From: Piromyces finnis finn | Lineage: Eukaryota > Fungi > Neocallimastigomycota | Assembly (NCBI GenBank): GCA_002104945.1 | Contig: MCFH01000018.1 | Coordinates: 248,001-312,000, forward strand | Direction: 5' to 3' | DNA: 64,000 nt | Shown here: piece by piece, positions 13,700-29,000 of the stretch | Layout of the letters: each line of letters begins with the position of its first letter | Numbering within the stretch: the stretch's first letter is position 1 | The notes under the pieces: generated by a model | What the model saw: only the letters and a program-made list of their open reading frames with translations | The model's database searches: none | Told to the model about the DNA's origin: nothing | Translations under genes and position numbers: made by a program

Positions 13700-15384
<1,685 letters not shown>

Positions 15385-17576: not shown

Positions 17577-20500
17577 ATGTCTGTAAAACAACCAACTTGG
17601 TATAAACCAAGTAGTACACAACCAAAATTAAAAGTTTATAATACTTTTACCCACGAAAAAGTATGTTTTTTTTTTAAAAAATAATTAAAATATAAAGTTT
17701 TTTTTTATTAGAATAAATATATATTAATATTATTAAAATAATCAAGGATGAATTTATTCCAGCAAATGGTAATGTAGTTAATTGGTACTGTTGTGGTCCA
17801 ACTGTATATGATGCTTCTCACATGGGTCATGCTAGGTAAATATAAAATTAATTTAATATTATTACTATTACAATAATAATTGAAAATACCTTAATAAACG
17901 TTTTAATTGCATTGTATTATAAAACAAAGAACCTTCATTACTTTTGATATTTTAAGAAGAATTATGCAAGATTATTTCAACTATGATGTTAATTATGTTA
18001 TGAATGTTACTGATATTGATGATAAGGTATATACATAAGAAAATATAAAATCAAATTTATAATTTTACTAATTGTCATTATCATTATTATCAAATAATTT
18101 AATTTATTTAAATGATATTAAATGTATATTAAACTATAATCGAAATATTAGATTATTCTTAGAGCTCGTCAAACCTTTTTAGTTAATCAAAAGAAGGAGC
18201 AATCTAATCAATTAACTAATGAACTTGTTAATGAAATTGAAGGTTATTTATTAGAATACATGAAAAAACAATTTAATGAATTCTTAAATACAAGCAAGAA
18301 TACCGAAGTTACATCTATAAATGACATTACTAAATTCAATAAAGAAGATTTTAAGTCTTTAGATAATCTTGAAAAGAGGGCTAAACTTTCAATGTATTAT
18401 GACATAGCTGTACGTTTTATAAAGAAGAAATAAAATAATATTTTAAACATTCAAAATCAATTGTATTATATTAATAAAAATATTATTAAAATAGTTCGAT
18501 TCTTTCAAAGGTATTGAAAAAGCTAAAGAAAATATCAATAATAATCAAATTTCCAAAGAAAATGCTGGTGAATTAGTTGAATCTTCCAGAGGTGTTGTTG
18601 GTATTGCTTTAGATGCTGTTGTAAGGATATATTTTAAAAAAATAGAAACATTTATTATAAATATATAAGCTATGTAAGTAAAAATATTTTAATTAATTTA
18701 AAATTGTATATGTATTTTATAGCATGGTGCTGAAGTTACTGATCCTAAGGTTTTCCGTGAATTAGCTGCTTACTGGGAAAATGAATTTTTCAACGATATT
18801 AAAGATCTTAATGTAAATAAATAAATATTAAATAAAATAATACAATTTTTGATGTATAACATTTTTTCATATTACAACTTAAAATAAGATCTTATATCCA
18901 GATTTTGTTACTCGCGTTAGTCAATTTGTTCCAGAAATTGTTGATTTTATACAGAAAATTATTGACAATGGCTATGGGTAAATATTAAGTTAAATAATTA
19001 ATTTGTTGAAAATAAAATACAAAAAATCAAGTTGTTAAATTTTTACTATTATAATAAAATATATAAGTTATGAATCAGAAGGTTCAGTATATTTTGATAC
19101 TGTTGCTTTTGATAACAGTCCAAACCATGATTATTGTAAATTAGCTCCATGGTCCAAAGGTGATACTAAATTAATGGAAGAAGGTGAAGGATCATTAGGT
19201 ATTAAGTTAGGTGGTAAGAAGAATCCAGCTGATTTCGCTTTATGGAAAAAATCTAAACCAGGAGAACCACAATGGCAATCTCCATGGGGATTTGTAAGTA
19301 TTTTTTATAAAAAAAATTTTTATATATATTTAAAAAATTAAATATTATAATTAATATATAAATAATAGGGTCGTCCAGGTTGGCACATTGAATGTTCTGT
19401 AATGGCTAGTAGAGTATTAGGTCCTAACATTGATATTCACAGTGGTGGTATCGATTTAGCATTCCCTCATCATGATAATGAAATTGCACAATCAGAAGTA
19501 TATATATATATTTTTTTTATTTTTTATAATTATTATTAATGGATGTTTTTGATACCTTGAAATATGTTAAAGAAATAAATATTTTAATCACTTAAATATC
19601 CTATAAAAATGTGAGATTCTCTGATTAAATTGTTTAAGCTACTACAATTTATTTCGTGTTTGCCTCACAATATTCAATTTTAATATTAATATTATTATTA
19701 ATAAAACTATTATTTCATTTATTAATAATGATTTATTTTAATAATTTCATTTAGGCTCACTTTGATAACAAACAATGGATGAACTATTTCCTTCATGCTG
19801 GTCACTTACACATTGACGGTCAAAAAATGTCAAAGAGTTTAAAGAATTTTGTCACAATTCAAGTAAATATATATATTTATATAAATATTTTTAATTAAAA
19901 CTTTTTAATATTTACAAATAATTGATATATTATATATTATTGTATTATTATTTAAAAACTAATATTTTAGGAAGCTCTTAAGAATTACACTGCTAACCAA
20001 ATTAGATGGATGTTCTTATTACATGCTTGGGATAGTGTTTTAGATTATAAAGACAGCACAATGACTGAAGCTATTTCTGTTGAAAGAACATTTAATGTAA
20101 ACATTTTATATTATAAATATAAAAATTAAAAATATAATAATAAATAATAAATATTTTTTTTAATTTTTTTAATTTAAACTTAGAATTTCTTTGTTAATGT
20201 TAAAGCTATCATTAATGAACAAAAGAGCAAAGCTAAAGAATTTACTGCTGATAATAACTATACCAACCTTGAAGATGAATTATTCCAAAAGTAAATATTC
20301 TTGAATTATTAAATATTAATAATAAAATGTAATTATATTTATTAATATATATATATATAGCTTAAAGCAATGTCAAAACGCTGTTAATGCTGCTTTATGT
20401 GATAACTTTGATACTGTTTCTGCTGTTCAAAATATGCTTGATCTTATTTCAAAGGTCAATGTATACATTACTCAAAACGGTAAACAAAAGAAAGAAGCTA

Positions 20501-26009: not shown

Positions 26010-29000
26010 TTATAATATATTTTTCTTATTTAATAAATAATTTAATTTTTCAAATACCACCGATACTTCATATTTGTCTTTATTTCTGCAAGCACTATTA
26101 TATAAATTATTAAAAAAATAAATATAAATAAAAAATCAATTTTAAAATTTTAATAATAGAGTGTATATATGAATTTATTAGAGGTAATACAAACTTTGTA
26201 AAAGTCGTTAAAATATTATCAGTTTCTTCTTTTGTTAAATCTGGATAATTTAACAGTTCTTCTTTAATAAAATCTAATAAATCTTCATTTGAATTTTCAT
26301 AAATTTGTTCTAATAATGAAGCAAACTCTTGAGCTATATCAGTTGATAAAAAGTCCTCGATGTTTTTTATATATATATTAAGTATGGTTTTTATTACATT
26401 TTTAATTGCTTGATAGTTAATATATCCGGATAAAACATTGACATTATAATTATTAAAAATTTCAGAATAGAATTCTATTATTTCATAATTTACTTTTAAG
26501 TCATTTAAATATAAACTTTTGGAAGAAAGTTCTAAAATTTGAGGTATTAAACTATGTTCATGAAAGATGTATGAAGGACTTTCAATTATGATTTGATTAC
26601 ATAAATGGAAATAATCTTCTAACGCTAAAATATTAATTTTATTTATTAATATATATATTGAATATTTATATAAAATCATTAGAAAAAAAAATATATATAT
26701 ATATATATATTTATTAAATGAAGTAATTATAAAAATTAATTATACTTTGAATATTTTTCATTATATCGTTTTCATTGAGTAAAAATATAACTTCCGTAAA
26801 TTTTTGAAATATTGATAATAAAAAGTTGTAAATTTCATCCTTCGATTCATTCATATATAATCTTATGCTGTGAGTGAATAGCCAGATATAACAATTATAT
26901 TTTGTATATTTATAATTTATTACTATTTGTTCTAATAAGTTTTTTATAGTAGGGAATATATCAAATGAACATGAATTCATAATATCAATATAGCAATTAC
27001 AAATCTCTTCTATTATTTTTTCATCATTTTGAAAAACTTCTAAAATATGTTTTAAAATTGGATGATAATTATTATAAAGCTCAATAATAGGATTAAATTC
27101 ATTAATACTATTATTTTGCTCAAGTTTCATGGATAAAAAGAGTGACATATACGATAATATATCTATTTCAATAAAACATTCAAGTTATAAAAATAATTAT
27201 AATTAAATTACTAAAATTTTATTGATAATATAATCAATAATAGTACATTAATTACAAATTAAAAATTTAATAAATACCTTGTATATCATATGCTATTATG
27301 TCTATATTATTATTTGGATTATTAATGTAATCAATATTACTTATTTGTTGTAACTTTTCGATTAATGGAAAGTTTAATTTATTAAGATAATAATTTATTT
27401 TATCTCTTGGTAAATGGATTATAATATTACAAAGTGATTTAATTAAATCGTAAATATCTTGGTAATTAAAAATATTTATCGCTTTCATATAAAAATTATA
27501 AAAATCTTCCAGATAAGCTATTAAATACTAAGATTTTGTTTTAAATTAATTTATTTTAATAAAACACATAAAATTTAACTGATATATTTATTTACTTACC
27601 ATTCCACAATATTCAGTAAATTTTAGTAAAGAGTATAATCCTTGATATCTATTATCTTCATTTTCAATAAAAGAAATTAAAAAATTTAACTGTTCTTCAA
27701 TTTTGATTTTATTATTAAAAGAATACTCCGATAAATCTCCTATTATTTTTATAACTATTATTTTTATATTATCACTATTTGGAAGATATGGTATCAACTT
27801 TATTATTTCTTTTACTATATTTTGATGATTACTATTTAGATTAAATATAATAGAATTGAAATAAAATAACTGAACTTCTATATCTTTAAGAGTTTCACTT
27901 TTAAATTCACCTTGTTCATTTTTCAAGGTTAAATTATTTTTTAATGATTCGTTTAACATAGTTAAAAAGTTATAATCATTTAACATTAAAAAACAGTTTT
28001 GAAGCATTATTTCAATAATTTCATATGATATATCATCAGTATTATTATTTGAAATTAATTTATATAAATTTAATGTTTTTTCTTGGAGAATATTATATGC
28101 TTCTAAAAATTGTGGTTTATATTGTTGATAGCCTATATTATTTAATTGTTCTTGTAACATTGTCCAAAATCTATATGTAATTTCAATACTATCTGGATAA
28201 ATAGTATAAAAATCAATTAATGAAGAAATAATAAATTGAAAATTATTATAATTTTCAATAATTGTATATATGTTATATTCGGAATATGTTTCAAATAATA
28301 AATTAAATATTAAAAGTGAATCAGTTGAACTAATTTCTTTTATATGTTTTGAAATTTCAAATATAGTTGGGGTAATAAAATTTAGAAGTTTTTTATTTAT
28401 GTCTGACGAAGAGGATGATTGAATTATTAATTCATTTATAATATTTCCAATAACTTCATCAACATCACTGTTTACTAATTCAGATAGTATATAGTTTATC
28501 AGTGGAGAATCTAATATATAATTTGGTCCGATTAATTTATATTTTATCCAATTATAAATACAATTATTAATATTTGACTTAAGTTTAGTATTATTATCTA
28601 ATAAAAAATAATAAGAAAAAATAAAATATTTAATTAACAGTCATTTTTGTTTAATTAATTATTATTCTTATTTAATATTCTATTTTTTAATTATTACAAG
28701 ATTTACTAGTATAATATGATAACAATCCTAAGATATTATTTAAAATATTATTGATTAAAGCTTTTTCTTTCATTTTTAATCTTTCGTCCTGTTACAAGTG
28801 TTATTATCGTTTAAGTTTTTAATTATTATTATTTTAAAACAGTTAGTTTCAACTGGTATAATCTTTTAAATTATAATATTTATATATTTCGACATTACTC
28901 CGAGCTTTAGTTGTTTATTATTTAATTCTTCGGGTATATATGCTAAAAATTGAAAAAGAATACTAATCATATCTGAATCTCTTTCAAAAAGTTCAAATAC

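Follow-up and report, generated by a model that had tools for sequence, protein, structure and literature searches.

A conserved candidate box H/ACA RNA in a cysteinyl-tRNA synthetase intron of Piromyces finnis, predicted to guide modification of both U2 and U6

Two pseudouridines, U2 Ψ34/35 and U6 Ψ40, fall within the snRNA elements through which the branch point and the 5′ splice site are selected, and little is known about how they are made outside animals and two yeasts. The animal guides for U6 Ψ40 (SCARNA3/HBI-100, ACA12 and Drosophila pugU6-40) are intron-encoded RNAs of ~135-140 nt that contain two hairpins. The U2 site, the first uridine of GUAGUA in the branch-site region, is served by H/ACA guides and redundantly by Pus7; the guides concerned, SCARNA8/U92/pugU2-34/44 and Drosophila scaRNA:ΨU2-35.45, carry a partner hairpin directed at U2 Ψ43/44(45). 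Pus7, which makes U2 Ψ35 in S. cerevisiae, is a protein-only, stand-alone pseudouridine synthase that recognizes its substrate by a sequence motif, with no need of a guide RNA. Fungal H/ACA RNAs acting on the U2 branch-site region are S. cerevisiae snR81 (U2 Ψ42) and S. pombe pugU2-43/44 (SPNCRNA.1709), and in Neurospora no H/ACA target is predicted on any snRNA. The passages on snRNA targets in a survey of fungal snoRNAs name no guide for U2 Ψ35 or U6 Ψ40, the survey has no mention of Neocallimastigomycota, and in the searchable literature we found neither a fungal guide for either site nor a snoRNA study of this group, in agreement with an earlier reading of Piromyces finnis DNA, made from the sequence alone (the “sequence-only reading”), which proposed a dual U2/U6 guide without prior description.

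The candidate is a predicted box H/ACA RNA of ~133 nt (positions 19540-19672; this and all other features described here are on the plus strand) in a 64-kb stretch of very AT-rich P. finnis DNA (the window; 20% GC). It is located within an intron of the CysRS (cysteinyl-tRNA synthetase) gene (19498-19754, GT...AG, 257 nt), between exons 19369-19497 and 19755-19862, whose translations read GRPGWHIEC... and AHFDNKQW...KMSKS. As the sequence-only reading had noted, the neighbouring introns are shorter, at 75 nt (19294-19368) and 108 nt (19863-19970), and the excess corresponds approximately to the length of the element. Contigs from RNA runs contain ~45% (0.45) of the words of 18900-20300, which is consistent with spliced mRNA, or exons only; RNA runs containing the H/ACA element were also looked for, and none were listed.

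The minimum-energy fold of 19538-19675 consists of two hairpins (-24 kcal/mol, z = -2.98; 3/200 shuffles fold equally well), and RNAalifold analysis of five orthologues yielded two hairpins identical to those of the single-sequence fold. In each hairpin a lower stem and an upper stem flank an internal loop, the pocket, and the folds have the hairpin-hinge-hairpin-tail arrangement of an H/ACA RNA, bearing out the order of hairpin, H box, hairpin and ACA proposed from the letters. The element has a GC content of 24%, compared with 2% and 7% for its intron flanks.

The same element is present in the orthologous CysRS intron of four further distinct, AT-rich relatives from metagenomes (the L009 group, the L001 group, L006 and L016), with identities to the P. 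finnis version of 82-93% by BLASTN (138-nt query) and 85-96% by local alignment. The segment is therefore conserved among relatives, as the sequence-only reading required, and the core of both pockets is invariant. Across three genomes, identity is 88% in the element, 85-90% in the exons and 24-43% in the remaining intron DNA; at third codon positions of the flanking exons, relatives agree at only 67-78%. Because the element is as well conserved as the exons, in an intron that has otherwise diverged, we judge it to be above chance. Non-functional hairpins could arise by chance in such an intron, since AT-rich DNA folds readily (as the shuffles illustrate), ANANNA and ACA motifs are frequent and pocket matches found by sequence only are common. 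That explanation is, however, effectively refuted by the conservation of the element in five distinct genomes against a diverged intron, and both the GC content of the element relative to its flanks and the extra length of the intron, which matches that of the element, also argue against it.

In hairpin 1, the 5′ strand of the lower stem (GGATGTTT, 19541-19548) pairs with an invariant 3′ strand (AAATATCC, 19594-19601), and all 8 pairs are kept in the five sequences, with a G·U pair in the P. finnis window corresponding to A-U in relatives. The upper stem (19557-19564 with 19580-19587) also contains 8 pairs, none of which is broken in any version; A-U, G·U and G-C all occur at one of them across relatives, and two alternate between U-A and U·G. 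Pocket 1 is composed of a 5′ guide arm, GATAC (19551-19555), and a 3′ guide arm, CACTT (19589-19593). The 5′ arm sequence (TTTTTGATAC) is unchanged in all five versions, and at the 3′ arm TCACT is invariant and followed by T, T, G, G or A. In H/ACA RNAs, ~14-16 nt reportedly separate the target uridine from its H or ACA box, and the distance from the start of the pocket 1 3′ arm to the candidate H box, ATAAAA (19603-19608), is 14 nt. The hinge reads ATAAAA, AAAATA, ATAATA, ATAAAA and ATATTA in the five versions, such that ANANNA follows the lower stem in 5/5 although the hinge sequence varies; the motif has low information content in AT-rich DNA, and its retention alone would be weak evidence for an H box.

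The lower stem of hairpin 2 (GTGAG, 19611-19615, with CTCAC, 19664-19668) is invariant and therefore provides no covariation information, and the base preceding GTGAG (T; A in L016) keeps no pair with 19669. The 5′ guide arm of pocket 2, TTCTCTG (19617-19623), falls within a 24-nt block that is invariant in the five sequences. It is followed by the upper stem and loop (19624-19653), in which 19624-33 pairs with 19644-53 through 9 pairs and one U·U mismatch (L016 lacks one of the pairs) and 19634-43 forms the apical loop. The 3′ guide arm, TCGT (19654-19657), is invariant, and the six bases 3′ of it (19658-63) change freely from one relative to another, which is what an unpaired spacer should show.

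In H/ACA RNAs, the ACA box (rarely AUA) is single-stranded, follows the lower stem and lies 3 nt from the mature 3′ end. Two candidates for this box are present. The first, an invariant ACA (19667-19669), begins 13 nt after the start of the pocket 2 3′ arm, and its A and C pair with a G-T of the lower stem in all predicted folds. The second (19670-19672), which is ATA in the window, ACA in three relatives and A(T/C)A in 5/5 versions, is outside the stem, and conservation stops immediately after it. With the first ACA, the pocket-to-box spacing of hairpin 2 is 13 nt, off the usual 14-16 nt; with the second it is 16 nt, and the box is AUA in this genome. The predicted RNA would end at ~19672, or at ~19675 if the second candidate is used. 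The positions that the sequence-only reading had given for GATAC, CACTT, ATAAAA, TTCTCTG, TCGT and ACA are all exact.

Among the five versions, the core arms of both pockets and the ACA are invariant and the stems nearly so; differences fall in the apical loops, the hinge, the position that follows CACT and the 6-nt spacer next to TCGT, a pattern that fits a guide RNA. For the 30 proposed pairs in five sequences, 149/150 cells are paired (99.3%), versus 38-50% when the partners are slid. Changes within stems comprise one compensatory pair and four one-sided changes via wobble pairs, and all but one substitution keep pairing. Covariation, which the sequence-only reading had suggested looking for, is thus present in the form of that single compensatory pair (A-U/G·U/G-C), but it is not statistically significant (202/500 shuffles reach the observed level; the five sequences are close and most stem pairs never vary), so that conservation and the way in which the versions differ carry the argument. 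A coding explanation for the conservation was rejected, as stop codons occur in all three plus-strand frames of hairpin 2 and 1-2-nt indels distinguish the relatives; no minus-strand ORF spans the element. A covariance model built from the element gave one match per orthologous locus and no paralogue within the 64-kb window. Three other ORF fragments, P0153 and P0154 (C-terminal piece 55% and 51% identical) and P0269, belong to other organisms with compact genes, and the model finds no element in them. Together, these data indicate that 19540-19672 is very probably a real box H/ACA RNA.

The sequence-only reading had proposed that pocket 2 pairs with 5′-ACGA-[U]A-CAGAGAA-3′ in U6. With U6 genes of other eukaryotes as the substrate, pocket 2 forms 11 bp around the U that precedes ACAGAGA, 7 bp of which involve the TTCTCTG arm (with CAGAGAA), and the TCGT arm pairs with ACGA directly 5′ of the target U. 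No other uridine of yeast U2 1-50 or of two U6 genes fits pocket 2. The sequence GGAACGAUACAGAGAA is carried by 13/13 intact U6 genes that we fetched from metagenomes. A metagenome scan with a U6 pattern that includes the 3′ UUCG hairpin yielded 14 loci, none of them AT-rich enough for an anaerobic fungus; an Rfam scan of the fetched U6 loci identified U6 and U3 genes only, and neither the U6 nor the U2 pattern matched in viral contigs. The 11-bp pairing, the invariance of both arms and the SCARNA3-like character of the 3′ hairpin (described below) all support the proposed interaction, and we consider it quite probable that pocket 2 targets the U6 Ψ40 site.

Pocket 1 (GATAC plus CACT(T)) forms 9-10 bp around U35 of the S. 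cerevisiae U2 branch-site region. The GATAC arm contributes 5 bp with U2 positions 37-41 (GUAUC, directly 3′ of the unpaired U-A; U2 sequence from PMC3177201), the CACTT arm pairs with (A)AGUG directly 5′ of the target U, and U35 is the only fit for this pocket among the uridines of yeast U2 1-50 (PMC3177201) and two U6 genes. Because the fifth base of the 3′ arm varies, this arm reaches 5 bp in two versions and stops at 4 bp in the other three. Hence the U2 pairing of the sequence-only reading holds for the GATAC/CACT core, but the arm is weaker than had been stated, with a total of 9 bp in 3/5 versions. The minimum bipartite guide-substrate pairing flanking an unpaired U-N is 8 bp (PMC6049503), which both pockets exceed when yeast U2 and the U6 of other eukaryotes are used as substrates.

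How often such pockets occur by chance depends on whether their positions are free or fixed. In random 64-kb DNA of the same composition, a U2-34 pocket of at least 10 bp with a box occurs about once, and a U6-40 pocket of at least 11 bp occurs ~0.06 times; sequence-only evidence for the U2 pocket is therefore no better than chance. One U6-type pocket of 12 bp at L031:354-390, inside a called gene and without a convincing upper stem, was dismissed as a chance occurrence. With pocket positions fixed, a random pocket pairs through at least 9 bp with any of the 28 uridines in U2(1-50) and U6 with P = 2e-4, and through at least 11 bp with P = 2.6e-5, giving a joint chance of ~5e-9 for the two fixed pockets.

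These estimates bear on the possibility that the H/ACA RNA and its U6 guide function are real and the 5′ hairpin is an orphan, serving a structural role (in RNP assembly or stability) or recognizing another target such as rRNA, with the fit to U2 being a coincidence aided by AT-richness. A U2-type pocket with a box is expected about once per random 64 kb, but the chance of such a fit for a pocket whose position is already fixed is far smaller (2e-4), and the uridine that is matched is one that is guide-modified in animals. The fifth pair of the U2 3′ arm is lost in 3/5 versions, yet 9 bp is enough experimentally (PMC6049503). In predicted folds of the naked RNA, one strand of pocket 1 can base-pair with the other (UGAU/AUCA), so the conservation of both could be structural; the nine core guide bases are all invariant, however, and the very next base varies. 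In favor of such a role, animal SCARNA3 shows no related pocket in its 5′ hairpin and yeasts make U2 Ψ35 by Pus7 alone; against it, the distance from pocket 1 to the H box is the canonical 14 nt. On balance, we regard a U2-independent role for the 5′ hairpin as rather improbable and favor the U2 Ψ34/35 site as the probable target of pocket 1, a somewhat less secure assignment than that of pocket 2; put together, the U6 assignment appears strong and the U2 assignment moderate.

Comparison with Rfam places the element closest to SCARNA3. At gathering thresholds there was no match in the window or in CysRS-related loci. SCARNA3 (RF00565) was the only full-length match (22 bits, E = 0.05 in 451 nt, against a gathering threshold of 47 bits), and it also matched in one relative, L004, at 21 bits, with the ACA of the model aligned to the second candidate box; of the four loci searched in relatives, three gave no match at E <= 10. 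Of two of the families that the sequence-only reading had put forward, SCARNA3 therefore returned a sub-threshold match and SCARNA8 none at E <= 10. By score the element does not belong to SCARNA3, yet its 3′ hairpin does contain the U6-Ψ40 pocket that characterizes the 3′ hairpin of that family. Like the animal U6 Ψ40 guides, the P. finnis element has two hairpins, a similar length and an intronic location. Its 3′ pocket, UCUCUG...UCGU, places the same U before ACAGAGA as in SCARNA3, these arms are also found in chicken SCARNA3, and the AG of its 3′ apical loop aligns with the loop AG of SCARNA3 (cmscan). It differs in that the pocket of the 5′ hairpin is unrelated, in that the pocket-ACA spacing is 13 or 16 nt rather than the 14 nt of chicken SCARNA3, and in that its host is a fungus rather than an animal. 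Common descent with SCARNA3 is inseparable from convergence, since the score is 22 versus 47 bits and there is no clear similarity outside the guide bases.

If the H/ACA appearance and the snRNA complementarity were accidental, the conservation could reflect a structured element that acts otherwise than as a guide, for instance in the control of CysRS splicing or expression. No RNA product was seen and covariation is weak, as such a role would allow, but single-stranded pocket arms that are as invariant as the stems, next to true spacers that vary, are hard to reconcile with it. Likewise, the distance from pocket 2 to the ACA is atypical, but H and ACA motifs are kept in 5/5 versions; and the Rfam scores are under threshold, but the sole full-length resemblance is to a guide for the identical U6 site. 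Two independent pockets, moreover, each fit a known pseudouridylation site, at the joint chance of ~5e-9 given above. A non-guide role is thus very unlikely.

The 5′ pocket of the P. finnis element is predicted to serve the same U2 uridine as SCARNA8/U92/pugU2-34/44 and Drosophila scaRNA:ΨU2-35.45, but its partner hairpin fits U6 and no other U2 site, unlike the partner hairpins of those RNAs. The predicted substrate uridine is identical to that of Pus7, which, unlike the P. finnis element, acts without RNA. Like snR81 and pugU2-43/44, the element would be a fungal H/ACA RNA for the U2 branch-site region; those two RNAs, however, serve other positions, and neither targets U6.

Both apical loops contain candidate CAB-like motifs. 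In Cajal-body-specific H/ACA RNAs, which bind WDR79/TCAB1 and localize to Cajal bodies, the CAB box of the apical loops is said to be ugAG, with the AG essential. The loop of hairpin 1 contains AAAG (19569-19572; an nnAG motif, GAAG in L016), of which AAG is invariant within an otherwise variable loop, and the loop of hairpin 2 contains TAAG (19635-38; AAAG or AGAG in relatives), of which AG is the sole invariant part. Of the possible CAB-like boxes that the sequence-only reading had pointed to in both loops, the AG is invariant, and positions 1-2 are not UG except partly in L016.

We consider it likely, from the conserved fold and pockets taken together, that the CysRS intron carries an H/ACA guide for both the U2 and the U6 site. 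After splicing, exonucleases would presumably trim the predicted RNA out of the intron, and it would assemble with dyskerin/Cbf5 and its partners Nop10, Nhp2 and Gar1, the proteins that bind stable eukaryotic H/ACA guides. Its 3′ hairpin would then guide modification of the U6 uridine before ACAGAGA, as do SCARNA3/HBI-100, ACA12 and Drosophila pugU6-40, and its 5′ hairpin would guide modification of the U2 site that is served elsewhere by SCARNA8/U92 and Pus7. This proposal would entail that the RNA accumulates and forms an RNP, that native U2 and U6 have the canonical sequences and that both pseudouridines are made. Since animals already have guides for each of the two sites, in other combinations, no new principle is involved; the predicted combination of U2 and U6 targets in one guide would be new for fungi, in which it has not been described.

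A broader scenario, which we offer tentatively and consider doubtful as a whole, is that in anaerobic gut fungi a single H/ACA RNP modifies the two snRNAs of the spliceosome's catalytic core, U2 at Ψ34/35 in the branch-site helix and U6 at Ψ40 in the ACAGAGA region, that guided modification of these sites is older than the split between fungi and animals, that the 3′ hairpin is a SCARNA3 homologue with a swapped partner, that the Pus7-only U2 and unmodified U6 of budding yeast are derived, and that the AGs of the loops act as working CAB boxes.

A conserved dual guide predicts that U6 Ψ40 is present, and that U2 Ψ35 is at least partly guide-dependent, in early-diverging fungi. U2 is an Sm-class snRNA transcribed by Pol II, and U6 is a Pol III transcript that has traditionally been regarded as modified in the nucleolus. 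A single RNA directed at both would therefore be a compact natural test case in the debate on how distinct the substrates of scaRNAs and snoRNAs really are (PMC6298559). The element also illustrates recombination of hairpin modules among H/ACA families. In anaerobic gut fungi, the 133-nt element may be used as a probe for small-RNA and Ψ-mapping work, and the covariance model derived from it would be a starting point for annotation of relatives.

The candidate RNA lies within a GT-AG intron of the CysRS gene (19498-19754, + strand), between exons at 19369-19497 (+; translation begins GRPGWHIEC) and 19755-19862 (+; translation begins AHFDNKQW). As the sequence-only reading had pointed out, this intron is longer than those on either side (257 nt vs 75 nt and 108 nt), and the difference is roughly the size of the element. 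The GC content is 20% in the window, 24% in the element, and 2% and 7% in the intron flanks.

Re-reading of the window sequence confirmed every coordinate proposed for the element, and fold prediction bore out the proposed hairpin-H box-hairpin-ACA organization: RNA spanning 19538-19675 is predicted to form two hairpins (-24 kcal/mol, z = -2.98), and RNAalifold, applied to the five aligned versions described below, independently returned the same two. In hairpin 1, the predicted lower stem (19541-48 with 19594-601) and upper stem (19557-64 with 19580-87) border the pocket 1 arms, GATAC (19551-55) and CACTT (19589-93). The H box, ATAAAA (19603-08), occupies the hinge. Hairpin 2 is predicted to consist of a lower stem (GTGAG, 19611-15, with CTCAC, 19664-68), the pocket 2 arms TTCTCTG (19617-23) and TCGT (19654-57), and an upper stem (19624-33 with 19644-53), all on the + strand. 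The tail contains two candidate boxes: an invariant ACA (19667-69), which is 13 nt from pocket 2 and drawn into the lower stem of hairpin 2, and directly after it ATA (19670-72), which is 16 nt from pocket 2 and reads AUA in the window and L009, and ACA in three relatives.

Using CysRS ORF fragments as queries, we retrieved contigs from public metagenomes and assemblies (17-25% GC, with the same exon structure as the window) that carry four more distinct versions of the element, all within this intron, such that the intron segment is conserved, a point on which the sequence-only reading had staked its proposal. Identity to the window (BLASTN, 138-nt query) was 92.8% for the L009 group, 89.7% for the L001 group, 88.2% for L006 and 82.5% for L016. 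In a three-genome alignment of 19100-20140, exons were 85-90% identical in all three genomes, the element was 88% identical, and intron 8, intron 10 and the intron 9 flanks were 24-43% identical. Aligned locally with each relative, the element (85-96%) exceeded the third codon positions of the flanking exons (67-78%). Trained on all five versions, a covariance model found one copy in each orthologous locus, no paralogue in the 64-kb window, and no match in CysRS loci from more distant organisms; two potential second copies in the window, at 28386-28465 (-) and 13799-13884 (-), scored at noise level (~14 bits, E ~5) and were rejected.

Several features of these loci were observed in passing. 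The protein database contains very many fungal CysRS ORF fragments with a break at exactly 19497/19498 (AQSE, then V from GT), and most of them reach, within ~45 codons, what resembles the next exon in a shifted frame, implying short introns at this position in those fungi; among the fragments compared, the 133-nt insert occurred only in AT-rich relatives. One contig (L013:1031-2427) shares the exon and element with the L009 group, diverges from ~60 nt past the element, and beyond that carries a Ras/Roc-family gene on the opposite strand, which points to a chimeric assembly or else to a rearrangement. In L016 (~370-535), expansion on the 3' side of the orthologous intron has given an (AAT)n run of ~100 nt, and the adjoining element is intact.

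Invariant in the five-way alignment are TTTTTGATAC, TCACT, both strands of both lower stems, the 24-nt block GTGAGATTCTCTGATTAAATTGTT, TACAATTT.TTTCGT and CTCACAA. The versions differ in both apical loops, in the 6-nt stretch that follows TCGT, in the base next to CACT on its 3' side (T, T, G, G, A) and in the hinge surrounding the H box, although all five retain an ANANNA motif there; at these sites an H/ACA guide would be expected to be free to change. Conservation of the single-stranded pocket arms takes the invariance beyond what a merely structural hairpin would need. Across the five versions, 149 of 150 stem cells are paired, compared with 38-50% when partners are slid. One stem pair runs A-U, G·U and G-C, four change on one side via wobble pairs, and one is broken in L016; in an alignment of just five close sequences, this covariation is not significant by itself, being matched in 202 of 500 shuffles. 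An AG is invariant in both apical loops (AAAG/GAAG in loop 1; TAAG/AAAG/AGAG in loop 2), which is compatible with the suggestion of CAB-like loops, although it fits only a relaxed CAB box and is not proof of one. These data indicate that the element is highly likely to be a genuine, conserved, intron-encoded H/ACA RNA.

To assign targets, we compared each pocket with all uridines of S. cerevisiae U2 (nt 1-50, sequence from PMC3177201) and of two U6 genes recognised by Rfam in fetched loci, and each had exactly one target. Pocket 2 pairs, as had been claimed, with ACGA-[U]A-CAGAGAA, the uridine preceding ACAGAGA in the reference U6 genes, through 11 bp in all five versions, and the element is very probably a U6 Ψ40-type guide. 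The sole target of pocket 1 is U35 of yeast U2 (AAGUG-[U]A-GUAUC), with 10 bp in two versions (the window and L009) and 9 bp in the remaining three. Both pockets are above the experimental minimum of 8 bp for bipartite guide-substrate pairing (PMC6049503). The case is weaker for the U2 pocket, which is short, lacks conservation of its fifth 3' pair, and has strands that are predicted to be able to pair with each other in naked RNA; we consider a U2 Ψ34/35 guide function probable as well.

Chance matches were estimated in two ways. Random 64-kb sequences that keep the window's dinucleotide frequencies contain on average about one U2-34-type pocket of at least 10 bp with a box, and ~0.06 U6-40-type pockets of at least 11 bp, so the sequence alone would not convince; it is conservation that decides against chance. 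For fixed pockets of the same composition, the probability that a random pocket pairs with any of 28 testable uridines is 2e-4 for at least 9 bp and 2.6e-5 for at least 11 bp. The ease with which sequence-only pocket matches arise is illustrated by an unrelated AT-rich contig (L031:354-405), where a 12-bp U6-40-type pocket with ATAATA falls within a gene called on the minus strand and lacks a convincing upper stem, and was for these reasons put down to chance.

Metagenomes yielded 13 intact U6 genes from a range of eukaryotes, and in every one of them GGAACGAUACAGAGAA lies upstream of the pattern used for the search. In some U6 genes, on fungal-looking metagenome contigs of ~50% GC, an additional hairpin capped by cUUCGg separates the conserved 3' part from the U-tail (L018:1837-1939, -; L019:3646-3761, -; L020:1450-1565, +; L021:1276-1396, -; also L023, L026, L028 and L030), a trait that may be common among fungi. 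In L029, a Plant_U3-type U3 snoRNA gene (962-1139) lies ~430 nt downstream of a U6 gene (426-528), with both on the same strand; this arrangement is also present in L022, L024 and L025 (eukaryotic contigs of ~33% GC).

In the Rfam scan that had been proposed, the only full-length resemblance was to SCARNA3, at 22 bits for the window (451-nt search, E 0.05) and 21 bits for L004, whereas the gathering score of that family, 47, is far higher. The UCUCUG and UCGU of the element align with the family's own pocket, and chicken SCARNA3 has the same pocket arms, but similarity beyond these target-constrained bases is slight. Homology is thus inseparable from convergence, and we kept the element out of the SCARNA3 family.

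Like pocket 2 as predicted here, SCARNA3 (HBI-100), ACA12 and Drosophila pugU6-40, the known U6-Ψ40 guides, serve U6-40. SCARNA8/U92 and Drosophila ΨU2-35.45 combine U2-34/35 with U2-43/44/45, whereas the second predicted target of our element is U6. Pus7 also makes U2 Ψ34/35 and is the sole route to it in S. cerevisiae. The literature searched yielded two fungal H/ACA guides directed at snRNAs, snR81 (U2 Ψ42) and pugU2-43/44 of S. pombe, and in Neurospora no H/ACA target is predicted on any snRNA. The snRNA-target passages of a fungal snoRNA survey name no guide for U2 Ψ35 or U6 Ψ40; that survey does not mention Neocallimastigomycota, and our literature search found no snoRNA work on them. 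Both predicted activities are known in animals, in other combinations; what is new in this anaerobic fungus is the predicted combination of U2 and U6 targets in one RNA.
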